From: Bigelowiella natans CCMP2755
Taxonomy: Eukaryota; Protista; Cercozoa
Assembly: GCA_000320545.1 (NCBI GenBank)
Contig: ADNK01000743.1
Location: 1 to 34,480 of the forward strand
Direction of reading: 5' to 3'
Length of the DNA: 34,480 nt
In this document: positions 11,422-23,776 of the stretch, piece by piece
Numbering within the stretch: the stretch's first letter is position 1
Layout: each line of letters opens with the position of its first letter
Notes under the pieces: model-generated
The model's input: the letters and a program-made list of their open reading frames with translations, nothing else
What the model was told of the DNA's origin: nothing
Databases searched by the model: none
Translations under genes and position numbers: made by a program

Positions 11422-14320
11422 AAGTTGTAGTGTCACATCCATTCGTCATCATCACCACAGAGTCGCTTAAGATCATATTTGATTCAGGACGGCTGTTAGA
11501 GGAGGTTGTAGCTAACTAGCTGGGGAGGGGGGGAAGGGGTGAAATGCATGTTTGAGTAGAATTTAGTAAGATCTTACTGGAGTCGACAACGCTGCTGCTG
11601 CTACTGCAGCATTTCTTCTCCTTCGTAATGGAGTCGACGCCGTTACAGCATTTGGCGTTGCAGCATTTGCAGCATTTTTTCCCCTCTGAGGACTCCTCGT
11701 CGTCATCATCATCACCACCTATGGAGGACAGCCTTCGAAGCTTTTTCGTAAGCTTGCCGAGACTGCCCTCCAGCATCTGGACACGGAGATCGAGGTCGTT
11801 TATCGACGCCAAAGTAGATCCTAAAACAATACCATTCATCATTATCATCATCATCATCATCATCATCATCGTTGCCTATCAACATCATTCTAGCAGAAAG
11901 AATGAGAACCAAAAAAAAGGGTCATCGTCCGTATCCCCGACGATGAAGATAATCTATTGCTTTTTAGCTAGCACCTATAGGAGTTGCTGCTGTTATGTTG
12001 TAGCTGAGCGCGTTTTCTCTTGTCAAAATCTTCTGTAGAGGAGGATGACTTAGGGCAGTATAAGTCTCCCCGAGATTCGTTCCCGGATGACCAGTAGGTA
12101 GAGAGGCAGTCGCAGGTGTCGCAGCCGTCGTTGCGGGGATAGAAGCAAGGGGTGTGAGGGAAGAGGCAGTCGTTGTCGGTGCCGCTTCTCGTTCCACAGG
12201 AGGGTTGGTAGGAGGGGGGGGAGATGAGGCAGTTGCAGGCGTCGATACCACCGCCGCGGGAGCAGAAGCTGGAGGCGGGGGAGAAGAGGCTGCTACCACC
12301 GCCGCCGCCGCAGGAGTAGAAGCAGGAGGTGGGGGAGGAGAGGAATTCGTAGGTGCTGTCACCACCGCCGTGGGAGTAGAAGCAGGGGGTGGGGGTGGAG
12401 AAGCTGCCGATGCCGCCACCACCGCAACAGGAGAAGTGGCAGGAGGGGAAGGAAGTGGTGCAGGTGCAGCTACCACCCCTGCAGGAGTAGAAGCAGGAGG
12501 TGGGGGAAGAGAGGAATTCATAGGTGCTGTCACCACCGCCGCGGGAGTAGAAGCAGGAGGTGGGGGTGGAGAAGCTGCCGATGCCGCACCACGGGGGGGG
12601 AAGGGGCGGTGTGCAGGTGCGCGCTACCGCCGTCACAGGGGAAGAAGCAGGAGGTGGGGGAAGAGATGAATTTGTAGGTGTTACCACCACCGCCGCAGCA
12701 GTAGAAGCAGGAGGTGGAGAGGAGGCAGTTGCTGCCGGTGCCGCCACTATCGCTGCAGGGGTTGAGACAGGAGGTGGGGGAGGAGAAGCTACCGTCGCCG
12801 CCGCCAATACCTCAGGAGAAGAGGCAGGAGGGGCGGAGGGAGGAGTTGCTGATGCCGCAACCCCTGCCACAGGAGAAGTGGTAGTTGCAGGAGGAGAAGC
12901 GGGAGGGGGGGACGATGCCACAACCTCCCCCGCCCCCTCTGCAACCTCTTCCGGAATAACTGCTTCTTGGACTTCCTCTGCAGCCTCTTCTGCGACCTCT
13001 TCCGCAGGGAGAGAAGCTGGGGCTGGGGCTGGGGGAGAGGAAGAAGCGGGAGTTACGCTGTTTGCAACCCTGCTCACCACCTCCTCAACTGTCTCTGGAG
13101 GAGAATCTTCCGGGAGCTGCTTGTGGACTGAATGGAGTTTATGCTGCGGATGACTTGGAGGGTTAGTACTCCCTCTTATTCCACGAGGTAGGCTGGTGCT
13201 GTTGATTGGTCCTTCTTCGAGAGACACGAAGGCAGCATGGCGAGCGACCTCAACCTTTTCGTACAGATAGTACCATTTAAAATTTGTTAATAGGAATATA
13301 CTTTTTTCTATTTCTTTAAAATTTCTTCTTAATGTTTTTTTCCCCAATTTTTTTCAATATACTCTTTTATTTAGTAAAGTATATTGTATTTACTGTTTAT
13401 ACGATTCAAGCACATGAAGTCTCAGGGAAGAAAAGGTGGTTCGTGCATGGAACGACTCTATTTTTCTGTGAGTTTGACTATCAACGGCAACCTGCTGCAC
13501 CAACTTCTGAGCGTCCGCAACGCTGCTCTCAATCTTGGAAAATATCATAATAAAGGGACGAAAAATTAAAAGTTTGTTCTTCTGCAGCAGCCCACTGCAT
13601 TCAGTAGCAGCATAGTTTCCACTAAACACCAATACCCCTACCCATAGATATATCTTGCTAGACCGACACATCAAAACGACTAAAGATGTTTGAGTTGGGG
13701 CATTTACGTACGTCTTCGTAAAGTTCCTTAATCTTTGCCTTTGCGGAGTCGCCGGTACTCATCGAGCTTGGAGAAGAAGGCTGATCGTCGGTCACATTGA
13801 TAATTACTTGATGTACGAGAGGGTCTTGCTTCGCTGCTTCCAGTCTGCGAACGATAGAAAGTGACAGACATTCAGAGGCTACGATAGGAACTGAGAATGA
13901 TTGCACCCACATTTCCTTAACGTCTCTGTCGAGGAGTATTTCATCGGCTATGCTGTCCCAATGAGCTTTTCCTTTCTCCCCACGACCGTGCATGGCCTCA
14001 CTGTCAAGTAGCCTGTTATCAAGAATGTGGAGCTTGATGTGCTCTATTCCTGGAATCTTCGAGGATTCTTTAGGTAGGATTCTGCAAGAAATCAAAGCAA
14101 AAAATGTTAGTATGCGAGTTCGTCAGAGTCATAACACAAAAGTCGAAGAAATGTCGCGTTAATCACTGCATGCAGGCTTATTAAATCCACCTGAATCTCC
14201 CTGAGACCGGGTGCCCAGACATAGTCCCGTTGACACCAACAAACATGCCTGCAAATAAAAGAAAACCTGCGAGGGTTTCCACCGTCCTTGCAAGCATTGT
14301 TCTCGTTTGTCCCTTCATAT
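7150..14320 (-). CDS. Large multi-exon protein of unknown function: long Pro/Ala/Ser/Thr-rich repeat region and a C-terminal globular region weakly resembling a discoidin/galactose-binding-like fold
   Basis: Phase-compatible exons run from IPGIEHIKLHILDNR...KELYED|IESSVADAQKLVQQ|VEVARH through PAST-rich exons (12090-13250, 10880-11350) to ...MKGYEASLIGPDVFGEDAFELYS|DRKYKITGEDF...|GYIFAWNDQFPE|TPQQRAPKGWELYGV|GNTELGEG...|DMNPEEQLRLVNEEIFQDFDPPGQDD* (stop 7150-7152). The 5' end is ambiguous (about 14300-14740). There is an apparent frameshift near 12585-12625. Confidence 0.75.
7821..7928. repeat. Compound microsatellite (AC)n-(AT)n-(GT)n, self-complementary, intronic
   Basis: Read directly; the AC arm is the reverse complement of the GT arm. 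Confidence 0.95.
10998..11120. repeat. Copy 1 of a 123-bp near-identical coding duplication (copy 2 at 12117-12239)
   Basis: Both copies encode PATASSPPPPTNPPVEREAAPTTTASSL(P/T)PLASIPATTAAT on the - strand, with only a few substitutions. Confidence 0.95.
12117..12920. repeat. Copy 2 of the 123-bp duplication, followed by a degenerate ~55-60-bp coding tandem repeat (SSPPPPASTPAAVV-type units)
   Basis: Recurring gcaggagtagaagcaggaggtggggg-like cores at roughly 60-bp spacing. Confidence 0.9.
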
Positions 14321-14774: not shown

Positions 14775-15968
14775 ATGCGTTCCAGAAGCCTCTGGTCCGA
14801 TGTGTATAGAGTATACGTTTTCGGGGCACGTTGTACTAAGCCGCTTCTTTCTTTTAAAGGATTTTCGCATTGGCCGCAGTCGCCTCCCATTCCACTACGG
14901 TTGGAAGGAGAGTAAAGCCAGCTATTTTGGGTATGCGATACGCTACACTCGCTGCACACTGATTAGCGCCCCCTGAATCACAAAATATATGATTTTGCAG
15001 ATATCAGTGGGCACACCGCAACTCCGAAACGGTCAGCCGACAGTCTCCTAGTTGCTTAGTCCCTTTCCCCCCTTTGACAATTTTTTTTGATTTAGGTCAA
15101 ACCCCATTGGCTCGAGCGTAGACAGAGATATCAAGGACATCGAGGAGATCCTCGCTTCCGTCGCACGGCAGCAGGAGTCACCTCGAGACTACTACTCAGA
15201 GTACAGATATGCCGAAGCCAGGAAGCAAAGTGGCCACAAGAAAAAAGAAAATAGGGAACGAAATCGAGAAGGTGAATGAAGAATCCTGAATCTGATAGTT
15301 TCCCCCTGAAAGCTAATGATTTACAGCAGGAAGCTATTCCACGGTCAAGACCCACGAAGCTACCGATAACGCTAATCATATGCAGCATATCCATAGCGCA
15401 TCATCCGAGGTGGTTGCTCTCAATTCACGTTGACGGAATATAATCTCTCTGGCAGGGCCTGACGTTTTATTTTGCAGGCTGTAAAGGGGAACATCATCAG
15501 CCAGATGAGCAGGGAAATGGAAACGCTGGTACGGTTGCAGAACCAGCAAATACAGAAAGATCATGCCAACAGGTAGGGAATCACGTGTGTTATAATAATA
15601 CAGTGGCTTGCGAAGCTGGTATTAGCTAAATTATTGCGCTTGAACATAAAGTTGAAAGAAAGCTCTTATTGAGGACGACATAGTCATTATCATCATCATT
15701 GTCATCAACAACATCTCGATCATCATCATCATCATCGTCATCAATGTATCTGGCAAAAGGCCGTCTGAAATTACTCGGCAAGTTCAGAATGTTTCGGTTC
15801 CGAAGGTAGTGAATATTCAGCACCACCCACTGATGATCTCCTTCGTCAGATATGGAACTGATTCAAACATGAATTAGATTGCGCAGAACCTTGACCAAGA
15901 TAACAACATGGAGGACAATTCAACTTCTCTGGGTATTCGCACCACCCAAATCTTGCGTATGCACGAGA

Positions 15969-16007
<39 letters not shown>

Positions 16008-16665
16008 GAGTATTAGTAGTAGTAGTAGACGACTGGTTATTTTGTATTCATATTTTCTTCAGAAGGAAACTCGGGAGAACTCGAAGAATCTACCCTGAAG
16101 CTCCACCAGCACTACCATGAATCTCAATTTTTGCACAGTCCGTCCGCCAGTACAATATGTCAACTGGATTCGTAGCTAAAGTTGCTGCTTGCTTTTACAA
16201 CAGAGATGAAAAGTGTGGTAGCAAAGCACCTGGAATTCCTCCAAAGGTGCAACATAGATGTCTCGCTCGTGTGTCCATTCTTCTTCCATTCTTCTTTCAT
16301 GACGTTCTTTGTTTGAACCAACAGAAATCTGAGCGCTGTCGTAGACAAAGAGACTGTATTGGAACGAAAGTATGAAAACTCTTAGAATCGATTGCGGAAG
16401 TCGAAATAAACGACCAACTTACACTTCTCAGATTCAAAGGCGCAATGAAAGAGCTCAAAATGAGGGAGCAGAACATAAAGGTGACATTTAGAGGACATAG
16501 CAATATAGCAATACCCGTCACCATCTGAGTAGTCCGCTTCATTTTGAAGGTTGGTGAGAGTAACTTATAATGTTATTTTCTCCAACAGGAAGAGATACTC
16601 GATGTAAAAGCCTTTGCATCTCAACCAGGAGAAGAATCATAAACATATACCTTAAATCGATGTGA
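14775..16665 (+). CDS. Secreted protein of unknown function, probably helical/coiled-coil; about 13 short exons
   Basis: Splicing gives MRSRSLW|IFALAAVASHSTTVGRRVKPAIL|DISGHTATPKR|SNPIGSSVDRDIKDIEEILASVARQQ...|AVKGNIISQMSREMETLVRLQNQQIQK...|KMKSVVAKHLEFLQR|NLSAVVDKETVLERK|FKGAMKELKMREQNIK. The N-terminus is signal-peptide-like. The last-exon frame is uncertain. No family recognised. Confidence 0.7.
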
Positions 16666-17476
16666 CCTGTCAATGCAGATATTATTTCGCCGCAATTATG
16701 TCGTCGCAACAATGCTATTCTTGAACTCGTTTTAAGCCCTCTCAGTGTTGCTTCTATACATTGAGAAACAAATCGTGACAAAATGCAAGACATTTGATGT
16801 ACTGCTTTTACATATCTCCATGAACTGTGACGTGTACAGGCTGCGCATAGCATATACATGAATGCTATGTAAAATGGGACTAGTAGCATGTATATGGACA
16901 GAACGTGTATATGTAGCTATGCTGACGAGACTACACAGCACAACATCGCAGCTAGCTTAGTGTGCAGCTGATATATAAATTATTCATTTTATTACGTTGT
17001 CTATAATTACAAGTCCTAAGTGCGCTGCCGCGCAGTCGCAGGTTTTTAGCCTGCTAGCCTGAGACTGCGTGTGTGAGCACGACGACATCGAATACGTACA
17101 CAGCGTGTTACAGCACATACATAGCCATACCTAGATGAGCAGGAGGCTGCGCGCGTACGTTGCTGATATGCTACAAACAGCGACACTGATTCAGCATTTA
17201 TTTGCAAATGTGGGCTGGCCATCCTGTTAGTCTCGCGCTCGCTATCATGGTGTTGTATGTGCTTTTACATATCTCCTCTAAATAAAACTTGAAGACGCAT
17301 TTTCCACAATCCACGACATTCGAGCTATACCCAATGGTGTGAACATCTGGACACATGGCTGCAGCATGTTTTATTGACATCATGCCGCACAACCACGTAC
17401 ATGCGACACACAACTGTACAGTACATTGCACCCCATCAATATCTTTGCTTCCACGAAGTAAAGGGGTCCCTTCCTT

Positions 17477-18283
17477 TCAACCTTTTCTACCGGGGCGAAG
17501 CACCCAGATCGATCCATCCGACGGCTCTACCTCCATACGATATCCCTGGCCGTGCGACAACTATTCGAAGCACACAGAGATTCATACTGTAAAGTGGCAG
17601 CTATAGATGGTGAACAAGTCGCAAACGATGGGATTTTTCTACATATCGAAGATAGGTTGCGGATGATGCACTTTATGCCCACAGTGCTAGAAAGAGGTGC
17701 CATAATCCATCATCGAAAATCTTCCACGTCTCCTTGCTGCTGCTTTGTGATCCCCCACCCTCTACTGCTAGACAAGTACCTCATTGAATATTGTCATTGC
17801 CCAGTGCTTGTCGTCGGCACTCGCGTGATTTACCTACATGATGCAGCATTTTAGATCTGTGTAATTGCTAGGATCCTCTCGCAGTGTTGTGGCAGTGATA
17901 ATTATCCGATTTGGTGAAGGGCACAATCAGCACAGCGGCTAATGCATAATGTTTACTGAGCTTCGTGTCGTCGCTGGAATAGGCGCTTCCTTTTACATAA
18001 AGACTGAGAAGAGATGTACGCGCTTTTATCTTTACTGACCGTGAAATTGTCATGGCTAGTAATGTGAGCCCTGATAGCCTCAAGTTTCGGACGACGGCGC
18101 TGCTGCTGCCGTGGCAGTCCTTTCCTTCCTTCTCCTCCATTCTTATTCTTCTTCTTCGATGGCCCAGCACAATCATCATCCAGAGCATCACTTAGAATGA
18201 ATTCATACACGACCTGATTGAAAGGAGGGTTACGAGTTGTGAAGTCTGGAAGATGACTTCGAGTATATTATGTGCGAAATTAT

Positions 18284-18317
<34 letters not shown>

Positions 18318-18847
18318 CCGAAATTTCTGGGCGGAATTGTTCGCACGGGCTCTGTCCCTGCTCGCACGCCGTGGGGAAGGTGACGCCAGGAATGAACCGA
18401 AACAAGAGGTCTCCCACCCCGTAAATGATGGGCACTCCTGCATGCTCCTCCATACGCTATCATAGCAAAGAAATATGAGAGATAGCAGATCAAACATTCC
18501 GCATTTTCGCTGTATTTTTCCAAGTCTCATATCAAGCCAAATAGACTTACTTGGATGTGGTGGCTCGATGTGCCCCAGATCATATCGACGGAGCTTCTTG
18601 CTGCGAGAGCCCTCATGAAAGTTTCCCTCTCTCCCGATGGGTTCCATTCAAAGTTCGGGCCTGATGGAGAAGTGTTATGCTGCTCATCTGGCTGAGTATG
18701 CACATATAATATTATATATAAAAAAATATATATATAGTGTGTTTATGTATGTGAGAGTGTGTGTGACTGTAATATTCTCCACGTCATCAAGACAATACCA
18801 TTTCCACAAGTACTACTCAAACGTGCTACCTGCTACTGAAACTCCTG

Positions 18848-18881
<34 letters not shown>

Positions 18882-19429
18882 GACTACAACCAGAATGCAT
18901 GTATAGTACGATGAAATCTCCCTGTCCCTCCTCTGTATCTCGATGGCGATTGATCTAAACATTATCCAAGGATTGGAGTGGAGTGAGGATTATGTGGTGG
19001 TGGGCGGCTACTAGTGCCAAGTGGTAGCAAGCACGGGATGATATTGATCAATTAATAAAATATTCAGTGTGTTATGCTGTGTGTGTGTGCGCGCGCGCGC
19101 GCATATTAATTATTTAGGTCGCAGTTTCACACATACTAAGGCAATGTTTAGTTGATATTTTGAGCTGTAGCTGTAGTCGTGTGCTCTCTTACTACCGCAT
19201 CAGCAATCTCAGTCACCGCTGTTTCCCCCACGGGGAAATCGAAGTACCACAAACCGGGCGCCGTCGCGTTGGCAGCGTAGCACTGGCGCGGGGGAAGTCC
19301 TGACATGGAGGATGGGAGACCTTCCCGAGGGAGAAGAGGTTATTGTTGTTTGAATAGCAGCACATCGAGAAATCGTAAAATTTTAGGATTCGATGATTCC
19401 TTTAATAGGCACTTCAGAGCGCTACATTG

Positions 19430-20689: not shown

Positions 20690-21112
20690 GGCTGTCGAAG
20701 CGAGGTTAATTTTTTTGCTAATCAGTGCTCACATTACTCAGATTAGCTAAAAATATTCGGATATTTATGGGATACTTTGACTTCGTGTCGAAATTATTGT
20801 TTTCGTTATTGCATTGAATTTCTTTGTCTGGCACGTTCAGCTTGGTCAAGCGTTGCTAGATTAATCCAATAAAAATCTAAGATCTATAATTTTTGTCGTA
20901 GACCAAAATTACCTTGGGTTCTTTAACCTAGATCTAAGAAAAATTTGGTCAGAGTTTTTTTTCAACTTTTTGCTTTTGAAGTGCCACGCGACGGCCTCGT
21001 AGCACCGCAAATTGCGAGAATAGGGACATCATTTTCCATGACGACAATAAAAAATATGCCAGAATTTCTAGAATTGAATTAAACGGGGTGTGATCTAGCA
21101 GCCACACTTCGA
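20690..21112. promoter_or_regulatory. Probable bidirectional promoter between the CapA-like and glutaredoxin genes
   Basis: 423-nt AT-rich, microsatellite-free interval between two divergent start codons. Confidence 0.55.
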
Positions 21113-22342
21113 ATGATAGGCCGGCAGCGTACGGGATGGGGGACATTGGTCCCCCTTCTTCTCGCCCTGGTGGTGGCGGTGATCTTCTTGAGTGGGGGAA
21201 GCTTAAACGGAAACCTATCCCGCGGAATCGTTCGACCTCAGATTCGAGCACATGTTTCACAAGGCATGATGGTTCCGCGAGGATCCTTTGCAGCCTCAAA
21301 ATCCCAGCGGTACTCCACCTTCGTGCGATCTCAAGAAAAGCCGGAATACGAAAAGTTCATGGTCGTAATAAGAGGATATATGATAAAATTCAAGAAAGCA
21401 GCTCCTGAGATATGTATGCTGATTTCAGGATTCTCCCATTGGAAACTTCATTCAGGGACTGTCGAAGTCCCTCTCCTCTGGGTTCATGGGACAGGGAAAA
21501 GTCGCAATGATCAAAGCTATGGCAGGCGAGTATGATGAAGCAAAAACACAAGCCTCTATTGACAGGTAAGCAAGAACAAAAAGTCCAAATTTGCACCTAC
21601 TAATTAAATGATTACTCAGCTACATCAAGGACAACAAAGTCGTGATGTTCAGCTTCACTAAATGACCCTTCTGGTATCGCAAACCACACAGAGAATGACA
21701 TAAAATTTTAGTCTGAAAATTTTCTGCTATTGTTTGCCGGTTCTCACGTAATTTACTCTATAAATGCAGCCTGAAAGCGAAGGCTCTTCTGGAGGAGAAG
21801 GGCGCTAGCTTTCAGGCCATTGAACTCGATCAGATGGGAGGTCCTACCAACTACTACTTCTTGACCATATTCCTTGTAGACTTTTTTTACAATAGTACGC
21901 AATATCATATTTGCACATGTTTTTGGATTTTTCTCGCGAACCTAACTCCTTCTTGAAACACAAAGATGAGGGGAAAGCCCTCCGAGCACAGCTAGGTGTG
22001 ATGACGGGTCGCACCAGGTAATAGTTGGTATTAAACTTATGCTGTTTATTTGCTACTCTTGTGACTGCTTCAAACATCCTCACCACAATTATACTATCCT
22101 GGCATGATACTAAATCAATTCTCTTATAAGCGTGCCGAACATCTGGATCGATGGTGAAGGAATTGGCGGCTGCAACGATGGGCCCGGTGATGAATGAGAA
22201 CATTTCTAATACCGCAATCGTACTCCTGTACTAATTTGTGTATCGTGTGGTACCTTTCTAATTACAAATATATTCAGGTATTATGACCCTTGACCGAGAG
22301 GGTAAGCTGGATCCCCTGCTGAAGGCAGCTGGAGCACTCTAG
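21113..22342 (+). CDS. GRX: Selenocysteine-containing glutaredoxin (UPFC active site) with bipartite signal + transit-like leader; 227 aa
   Basis: Exons 21113-21361, 21429-21565, 21620-21673, 21770-21840, 21966-22017, 22131-22186, 22278-22342 (684 nt; all introns GT-AG, phases consistent). Product: MIGRQRTGWGTLVPLLLALVVAVIFLSGG...AGEYDEAKTQASIDSYIKDNKVVMFSFTK-U(TGA 21663-21665)-PFCLKAKALLEEKGASFQAIELDQMGDEGKALRAQLGVMTGRTSVPNIWIDGEGIGGCNDGPGIMTLDREGKLDPLLKAAGAL*. The class I Grx motifs SVP and GGCND are intact downstream of the TGA. Confidence 0.95.
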
Positions 22343-22428
22343 ACGGATGATCAAGACAGCCAACACCAACGGTGTTTAAAGCAAGCTTTTCTCCAAATAT
22401 ATCTTGCAACAAGCTCTTGCGATTGATC

Positions 22429-22555
22429 CAGGTCCATGCATATGATCGCTATGATGCTAAAACAATCCTTCGGGTCGCCTTTCGATAGTGCCATTTTCTC
22501 ATAATGGTGCATCATCATGGCTAGCTTCATAGCGGGAGAAACCCTTGTGGACCTG
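22429..22555 (+). promoter_or_regulatory. SECIS-like element in the glutaredoxin 3' UTR
   Basis: Helix I: CAGGTCCA (22429-22436) pairs with TGGACCTG (22548-22555). Core: ATGA (22442-22445) opposite GA (22536-22537). Helix II: CGCTATGA-T-GCTA pairs with TAGC-T-TCATAGCG. An AAAA run (22459-22462) sits at the top of helix II. The apical region is about 60 nt, longer than canonical. Confidence 0.8.
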
Positions 22556-23776
22556 AACTCGTATCTGAGCCGCACAGACGTATTGATAGGAAGCGTGTGA
22601 TGAACACAGGTGTATGTCGAATTCTATCTTAACAATGCTCCATACGCTACATATATATTTTCTATAGCCTATATAATGCTTAGGTTATAAACACGAGAAA
22701 TGGCATAAAATAACGACGAAGTCGTTCAGATGCATGTGTCTAGATGTGCGCAGCTCGCCCAAAGCACATCGGAAGCACAAAATGGCATGATTATGTGGTT
22801 GTTATGTAGTTACGCACGCGCGATGATTGCCACGGTAGTAGGACTAGCTGCAAGGGTTTGCGTACGCTAGTCACTCGTGCTCATCGTGCACGTTGAATCC
22901 CACGCAAAATGACCGCATGCATCGTCCAGCCAGATTGCTCGCCAGACACGAATTCTAGAATTCCCATTCACTGTGACATCACAAATCTGAAATGCTGGTC
23001 AGTGAACCATTGCATCATTTTGCCCAGCTAGCCTTCTACCAAGGTACCACTGACAAAATGTGCACATTGTGCATGTTGCAATGTGCACTGTGCGCTTGTG
23101 GCATTGTCTAGGCACGGTGTTGTCCTGGTGCATTGCTGGATTGGCTTCCGATGCCGCACACGCGGACTGCAAACATTTTTTCAGAGGTCTAAGCCTTTGA
23201 CTTTTTTGTCTTTGGGTGCCTGACAATTGGCATTCATTTCCATGTCAAATCAAATTCTCATGTTTGTTGTCTGAGCTAACTGACGATTCCTTTGCGGCAA
23301 TGAAGGGCATTGCCTGCTGTCCTGCTCTCTTTGAATGGCTTCGTCCATGCGAGCTTCTCTTTCAGATGGAATGACCACGATCCCCACAACAACTGCGGGC
23401 ATTGTGTCTGCGATCTCGCAGTCCGTTGATGCGCATGCCTACACTCAGTGTCAGCCGCGCATCACGGGAGCTGAGCACTCAAATCAACCATCCGGTAGCT
23501 CGCTAAACGGGACCACAGATGGATTTACTGCGTCAAAGGAGTTTTGTTGTCGCACATGCAAATCATCAGAGGTACACCACATTTCGGAAGAGGGGTACAC
23601 ACGCGATGCCACCCGAGCGATGTACGGAAGAAATAAATACCGGGAGTATGTCGTAGATTTTGGACATTTAATGGCATTTTTACCTGAGCGACATCTGTAA
23701 TATCCGATTTAAGGAAAACATCACCTTCTGGCCTTCCAACAGGGGCACATAAAACCCCAAAACCCAAGAGCTACCA

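Follow-up and report, generated by a model that had tools for sequence, protein, structure and literature searches.

A transcribed and unspliced SECIS element with a predicted Y-shaped apex in the 3' UTR of a selenocysteine-glutaredoxin gene of Bigelowiella natans

Positions 22429–22555 of a 34 480-nt stretch of Bigelowiella natans DNA (the window, to whose numbering all coordinates without a contig name refer) probably form the functional SECIS element of a selenocysteine (Sec)-glutaredoxin mRNA, used in its unspliced form and carrying, in its predicted apex, a 45-nt hairpin (hairpin B) as a tolerated expansion. The element is a transcribed, unusual SECIS variant; what it reveals is not a new mechanism but a gap in the reach of SECIS finders. 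Genome searches were performed on the B. natans assembly (91.4 Mb, 3736 contigs, ADNK01000001–ADNK01003736), in which the locus is contig C2994 and in which a tRNA-Sec gene was found with 68.5 bits. The species is reported to have 23 selenoprotein genes, and glutaredoxins (GRX) that contain Sec form an established family among SAR and haptophyte algae (PMC7539508; Jiang et al. 2020). The tRNA-Sec gene and this published selenoproteome lend indirect support to UGA-to-Sec recoding in the glutaredoxin mRNA.

The host gene lies on the plus strand at 21113–22342 and consists of seven coding exons (21113–21361, 21429–21565, 21620–21673, 21770–21840, 21966–22017, 22131–22186 and 22278–22342), separated by introns 1–6 of 67, 54, 96, 125, 113 and 91 nt, all with GT..AG ends. 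The joined coding sequence was only translated, as a frame check, and homology was searched exon by exon. The translated product has a hydrophobic leader at its N terminus and a glutaredoxin domain of the dithiol type, in which an in-frame UGA (21663–21665) replaces the first active-site cysteine in the motif FSFTK-U-PFC; past this UGA the frame remained intact for 83 codons, over four further correctly spliced exons, up to a TAG stop codon (22340–22342). Glutaredoxin paralogues in the same genome were matched by exons 6 and 7 with E values of 2e-6 and 2e-5. The closest paralogue, on contig C2807 (L014; G000:C2807:2601-5723), carries CPYC where the Sec-glutaredoxin has its UGA motif, and the UGA is thus at the CPYC-equivalent, cysteine-homologous position. 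The C-terminal exon of this paralogue is very similar to that of the Sec-glutaredoxin (GIVPLHASGKLVPMLKEAGSL), and the two genes are a Sec/Cys paralogue pair within one genome. Exon 1, used as a protein query for orthologues, gave no match, and the exact 22-nt pattern of the SECIS core gave none in metagenome contigs. In another part of the window, positions 12001–13000 were a compositional outlier (GC 0.625, GC skew +0.27, AT skew +0.18; GC about 0.45 elsewhere), overlapped on both strands by long ORFs without a Pfam match.

Expression was assessed in public RNA data. Twenty runs from eight studies contained about 0.44–0.49 of the sampled words of 21100–22700, which is roughly the level estimated for exon-only RNA. 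Four runs were aligned to 20900–23300 (2401 letters): transcript contigs from three studies (X1, X3 and X5) and raw reads (X21). All six predicted coding joints, each with GT..AG ends, were carried by the contigs of X1, X3 and X5, and the seven-exon gene model is therefore confirmed. Word depth in the three transcript assemblies was 104–470. Across the 3' UTR the contigs matched the genome colinearly, free of differences and gaps, over 22277–22647 (X1), 22342–22641 (X3) and 22277–22664 (X5). Run X21 comprised 60-nt raw reads, apparently 3'-end-biased, that spanned 22358–22681 at a mean depth of 18–63; its sole joint was one read over intron 6. Three of its reads ran into 18 A's after 22653 and the contigs ended at 22641–22664, placing the poly(A) addition site at approximately 22653 on the plus strand. 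From the colinear contigs and this poly(A) site it follows that the mature mRNA ends about 100 nt past the SECIS element and holds it whole. Polyadenylation upstream of 22555 had been named in the original prediction as an observation that would speak against a SECIS element; the tail begins well downstream of that position. Loose ends of X3/X1 contigs at 22371, 22641 and 21105 had no map place in the window and were taken as assembly chimeras. Further downstream, a weakly expressed neighbour transcript covered 22963–23300 and beyond; one contig linked 23222 to 23317, probably over a 94-nt intron.

The whole element, from the 5' arm to the 3' arm of helix I (22429–22555, plus strand), was folded with RNAfold and gave a minimum free energy of −46.8 kcal/mol (z = −3.96, 0 of 200 shuffles equally stable); this stem-loop is far beyond chance. 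Helix I pairs 22429–22437 with 22547–22555 over 9 bp (pair probabilities 0.92–1.0). Between helix I and helix II the sequence has the K-turn quartet, of which the 5' half is AUGA (22442–22445), 99 nt downstream of the stop codon, and the 3' half is GA (22536–22537), in the context G-GA-G. Helix II joins 22447–22459 to 22522–22534 in 13 positions with 12 pairs and one U.U mismatch, namely a perfect 8-bp stem (22447–22454/22527–22534), the mismatch (22455/22526) and a 4-bp extension of GCUA with UAGC (22456–22459/22522–22525); a test hairpin of this helix had −17.3 kcal/mol. Pair probabilities were 0.9–1.0 in helix I, in helix II with its extension and in the base and top of hairpin B, with the exception of the first pair of helix II (0.68) and the middle 3 bp of hairpin B (0.84–0.85). 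AUGA, the helix II arms and GA were all found where the original prediction had placed them, and the distance of about 60 nt that it gave between the arms measured 62 nt (72 nt between the 8-bp arms). In run X21, a T>A change at 22526 was seen in 3 of 52 reads, which would convert the U.U mismatch of helix II to a U-A pair, and a T>G change at 22480, in the internal loop of hairpin B, in 3 of 17 reads; these variants could be alleles, strain differences or errors.

Within the apex, AAACA (22460–22464) is unpaired in the predicted fold, and its first A's together with A22459 make an AAAA run (22459–22462) that was taken as the AAR motif, 13 nt after A22445 or 14 nt if A22459 pairs. It is followed by hairpin A (22465–22475), a mini-stem of 4 bp closed by a loop of 3 nt (or, in an alternative form, by a cUUCGg tetraloop; pair probabilities 0.65–0.75), which in this fold occupies the place of helix III of a type II SECIS. 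One unpaired base separates hairpin A from hairpin B (22477–22521; pair probabilities 0.84–1.0), the extra arm that makes the apex a three-way junction; hairpin B is predicted to start from a 3-bp base and an internal loop, to rise through 3 bp, a bulged A and a further 8 bp to a 7-nt loop, and to be followed directly by the 3' strand of helix II. As far as the fold can be relied on, the apex is best described as that of a type II SECIS with a 45-nt hairpin in the 3' strand of the apical internal loop, and the same model without hairpin B (helix II, AAA, mini-stem) is a textbook type II SECIS. A non-canonical SECIS with a long apex had been one of the two options of the original prediction; this option fits the predicted fold, and it is refined here to a Y-shaped apex. 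When 22456–22525 was folded alone, the same apex was obtained with z = −1.73 and 11 of 200 shuffles equally stable. This is only a modest excess and counts against the apex, and because of it the Y shape is treated as a prediction rather than as a demonstrated structure.

In the mechanism proposed for the element, which is that of eukaryotic SECIS elements in general, the SECIS-binding protein SBP2 would bind the AUGA/GA K-turn between helix I and helix II, with the unpaired A run 13–14 nt above the core acting as AAR motif. K-turn and AAR motif together would direct Sec-tRNA(Sec) to the UGA at 21663–21665, which in the mature mRNA lies 351 nt farther upstream. Hairpin B would stand out on the far side of the junction, leaving the recognised parts undisturbed; since it is predicted to stand opposite the AAR motif and away from the K-turn, we infer that it is a tolerated expansion.

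For comparison, Sec genes elsewhere in the genome were located by means of TGA-containing Pfam matches, and the 3' regions of these genes were then searched for SECIS elements. For ten B. natans selenoprotein genes, the Sec-glutaredoxin included, this yielded seven compact elements, the long element of a methionine sulfoxide reductase (MsrA), one glutathione peroxidase (GPx) candidate and the one branched element. Compact elements (41–63 nt from AUGA to GA) follow three GPx genes (C2359, C1529 and C3163), a KDEL-ending ORF (C970), a Sep15-like gene (C3304), a Sec-MGMT gene (C1380) and a gene with an Rdx fold (C1943). Most of them share the layout of the glutaredoxin core, with AUGA or GUGA, about 12 nt, AAA and mostly G-GA on the 3' side, and this likeness to SECIS elements of Sec genes in the same genome argues for function. 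GUGA appears to stand in place of AUGA in the core of one GPx element (L003:1136-1206:-) and of the Rdx-fold gene (L010, reverse-complement 1920-1978). The G-GA at the 3' side of the quartet, as in the glutaredoxin element, was seen in 6 of the 9 other elements or candidates; in animals, U/A-GA is common at this place. Contig C970 has an ORF ending in PKDEL, followed after about 130 nt by a compact type II SECIS (L001:1496-1573:+; G000:C970:12179-12256), and this ORF presumably encodes an ER-resident selenoprotein. TGA-containing Pfam matches to thioredoxin (C2337) and AhpC-TSA (C2467) were rejected as cysteine proteins with the TGA in introns, and no further usable Sec gene came from searches with Redoxin, AIRS_C, Thioredoxin_4, Pyr_redox_dim and PUB.

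The Sec-MsrA gene (GUFW motif) is followed by a SECIS-like stem of 96 nt (G000:C3223:18732-18862, minus strand; L074:1339-1469) with a minimum free energy of −39.0 and z = −2.88. Its predicted fold has a 7-bp helix II and then a very long unbranched upper stem; A-rich sequence is confined to an ACA internal loop, 9 nt past AUGA, and to AUAAA near the tip. A 120-nt GPx candidate on the same contig (C3223 15130–15279, minus strand) was not counted as a SECIS element (z = −0.75; constrained fold −26 against a minimum of −44). The MsrA and GPx selenoprotein genes of this region (C3223, about 15000–19400; L009 and L074) share a strand in head-to-tail order with about 2 kb between them, and selenoprotein gene clusters in B. 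natans are mentioned in a published algal survey. The MsrA element shows that Sec genes of B. natans can bear oversized apices, and this too argues for function of the glutaredoxin element. The original prediction had proposed a survey of the genome for the same layout: oversized apices recur, in the unbranched form of MsrA, and among the ten genes the glutaredoxin element was the only clearly branched one.

The recurrence of an oversized apex at MsrA would also agree with an apex that is not passive, that is, with a working SECIS in which hairpin B is a regulatory module or in which the apex takes a different fold in the cell, for example one large loop. In the regulatory version, hairpin B could be the site of a lineage-specific protein and tune Sec insertion, mRNA stability or localisation, and a well-defined 14-bp arm with high pair probabilities is what such a site might look like. 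Against this stand the modest z-score of the apex alone, the compact form of 7 of the 10 SECIS elements of the genome and, as compared by eye, a lack of sequence similarity between the glutaredoxin apex and either the long MsrA apex or the weak GPx candidate on C3223. A search of the B. natans genome DNA with the glutaredoxin element returned only the element itself, which is thus single copy with no similar sequence in the genome, and on this result a dispersed repeat as the source of the apex was rejected. Taken together, an apex of either kind is unlikely. A wider proposal, under which Y-shaped SECIS elements would be a functional and uncatalogued class of chlorarachniophytes and perhaps other protists, with hairpin B as a handle by which Sec insertion into this plastid-type glutaredoxin is regulated, be it by a lineage-specific binding factor or by its own rare, conditional removal, is likewise considered unlikely. 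The favoured reading remains that of a functional SECIS element with a passive hairpin B.

Recognition of the element by search models was then set against published limits. Published SECIS rules require 10–13 nt from the quartet to AA and an apical loop of 6–23 nt or an AA-to-GA distance of 15–39 nt, and explicitly remove Y-shaped candidates (PMC1802603, PMC2375036, PMC3753652). The glutaredoxin element agrees with the first of these rules and fails on the others, with an AA-to-GA distance of about 75 nt, an apex of 62 nt and a Y shape of two hairpins; it is outside the canonical apical limits of SECISearch. The Rfam SECIS covariance models gave no match on it at E <= 10, either in 2.5 kb of sequence or in a 156-nt cut-out. 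This is a test of low sensitivity, by which the compact B. natans elements were mostly missed too: in the whole genome, with eight other loci also searched, the models gave a single sub-threshold match (RF00031), at the KDEL-ending gene on C970, whose element was the sole SECIS_1 match genome-wide with 24.8 bits, below the cut-off of 35. The expectation that the element would evade SECIS searches was thus borne out for the Rfam models and for the published SECISearch rules. A MAFFT alignment of six B. natans SECIS elements was misaligned, and a single-sequence covariance model placed true SECIS elements at 7.5–10 bits amid noise and misplaced the long elements in its alignment. Conclusions were drawn with a helix-energy scanner, which scores the helix II and helix I arms around each [AG]UGA...GA pair. 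The glutaredoxin element scored −30.9, the best reversed-sequence control (about 230 kb, both strands) −24.2, and 22429–22555 was the sole SECIS candidate of the glutaredoxin 3' UTR.

The pair probability of only 0.65–0.75 in hairpin A and the failure on the two canonical size limits (AA-to-GA distance and apical loop) count against a functional SECIS element. The size limits, with the silence of the Rfam models, and given that we infer Sec insertion itself, leave room for a different account, in which 22429–22555 is an incidental or differently used structure of the 3' UTR and translation stops at the UGA, so that the gene either yields a 143-residue product or is decaying. This account is very unlikely. 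It would leave to coincidence that the UGA falls exactly on the catalytic cysteine of a conserved CPYC-type motif in a frame that continues over 83 codons and four exons, and that AUGA, an AAA at the right distance, GA and both helices occur together 99 nt past the stop and outscore every control. In addition, the mRNA is well covered although the UGA precedes four exon junctions.

The other option of the original prediction was that a 3' UTR intron builds the SECIS by its removal. The segment in question, 22474–22524 on the plus strand, is indeed 51 nt long and is bounded by GT (22474–22475) and AG (22523–22524); its GTC start is like that of introns 1 (GTCGTA) and 4 (GTCCTA), its length is near the 54 nt of intron 2, all three of these introns being confirmed by transcripts, and by coordinate arithmetic alone the form with the 51 nt deleted would be inside the canonical size limits. 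Such ends and such a length are plausible for a spliceosomal intron, but their occurrence is not beyond chance and is uninformative: 54% of the 73-nt windows of this contig, and 62% of shuffled versions of the region, contained a GT..AG pair 40–70 nt apart. Transcripts of three studies in which the six coding introns are spliced run colinear through the segment, and the 22473^22525 joint was absent from the contigs of X1, X3 and X5, which drop rare variants, and from the X21 raw reads at a reporting threshold of 1% and a depth of 17–63, at which an isoform below about 10% would escape. Three X21 reads diverged after 22478 for about 10 nt with low agreement; their letters do not fit a clean 22473^22525 junction, and these unexplained ends were not interpreted because most X21 reads have loose parts. 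Given the read and contig evidence and the frequency at which GT..AG pairs arise by chance, the segment was rejected as a 3' UTR intron; every transcript seen in the four runs retains it. Assembly of the SECIS by splicing is not supported, and its remaining version, in which 22474–22524 is removed in a minor or condition-specific isoform (for example in response to selenium supply) and only the compact form is active, is extremely improbable, since the well-covered mRNA is the unspliced one and it is this mRNA that must support Sec-glutaredoxin synthesis if the protein is made. In the searchable literature, a phrase search gave no mention of SECIS elements split by introns and no description of a functional Y-shaped SECIS, which is not proof of novelty for either.

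SECIS prediction underlies all selenoproteome censuses, and standard tools reject branched apices and long AA-to-GA distances. That a SECIS of otherwise textbook form, transcribed and belonging to an evident Sec-for-Cys glutaredoxin, bears a predicted 45-nt side arm suggests that genuine selenoprotein genes of protists can be lost through these filters, and that large insertions into the apical loop, on its 3' side, are tolerated by the Sec machinery. The glutaredoxin element is a simple, naturally occurring substrate on which to find out what parts of the apex are important.

Among known systems, the type II (form 2) SECIS is like the glutaredoxin element in its location in the 3' UTR of a UGA gene, its helix I, internal loop and AUGA/GA quartet, its helix II of about 12 bp, the unpaired A run 13–14 nt from the quartet and the short mini-stem that follows, here hairpin A. 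It differs from the glutaredoxin element, which has a predicted 45-nt hairpin where the mini-stem would lead into the 3' strand of helix II, an AA-to-GA distance of about 75 nt where SECISearch allows 15–39 nt, and no response from the Rfam models. A spliceosomal 3' UTR intron would share with 22474–22524 the GT..AG ends, a length (51 nt) near that of the shortest intron of the gene and a G preceding the donor, but the segment is unremoved in the transcripts examined and its boundaries occur at chance frequency. The Sec-glutaredoxins of SAR and haptophyte algae (PMC7539508) are likewise of the dithiol type with Sec for the first active-site cysteine and likewise come from selenoprotein-rich marine algae, although what has been described there is the protein family and not the architecture of a glutaredoxin SECIS. 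SECIS elements with a long mini-stem have been reported from Ostreococcus, Chlamydomonas and the deiodinase-like gene of Dictyostelium (Lobanov et al. 2007, PMC2375036); like the glutaredoxin element they are of protist or algal origin and have an apical part much longer than that of animals, and the MsrA SECIS of B. natans is predicted to be of this same unbranched long type. In those elements the extra length is a single continuous extension of helix III, whereas in the glutaredoxin element it is predicted to form a side arm beside a normal short mini-stem.
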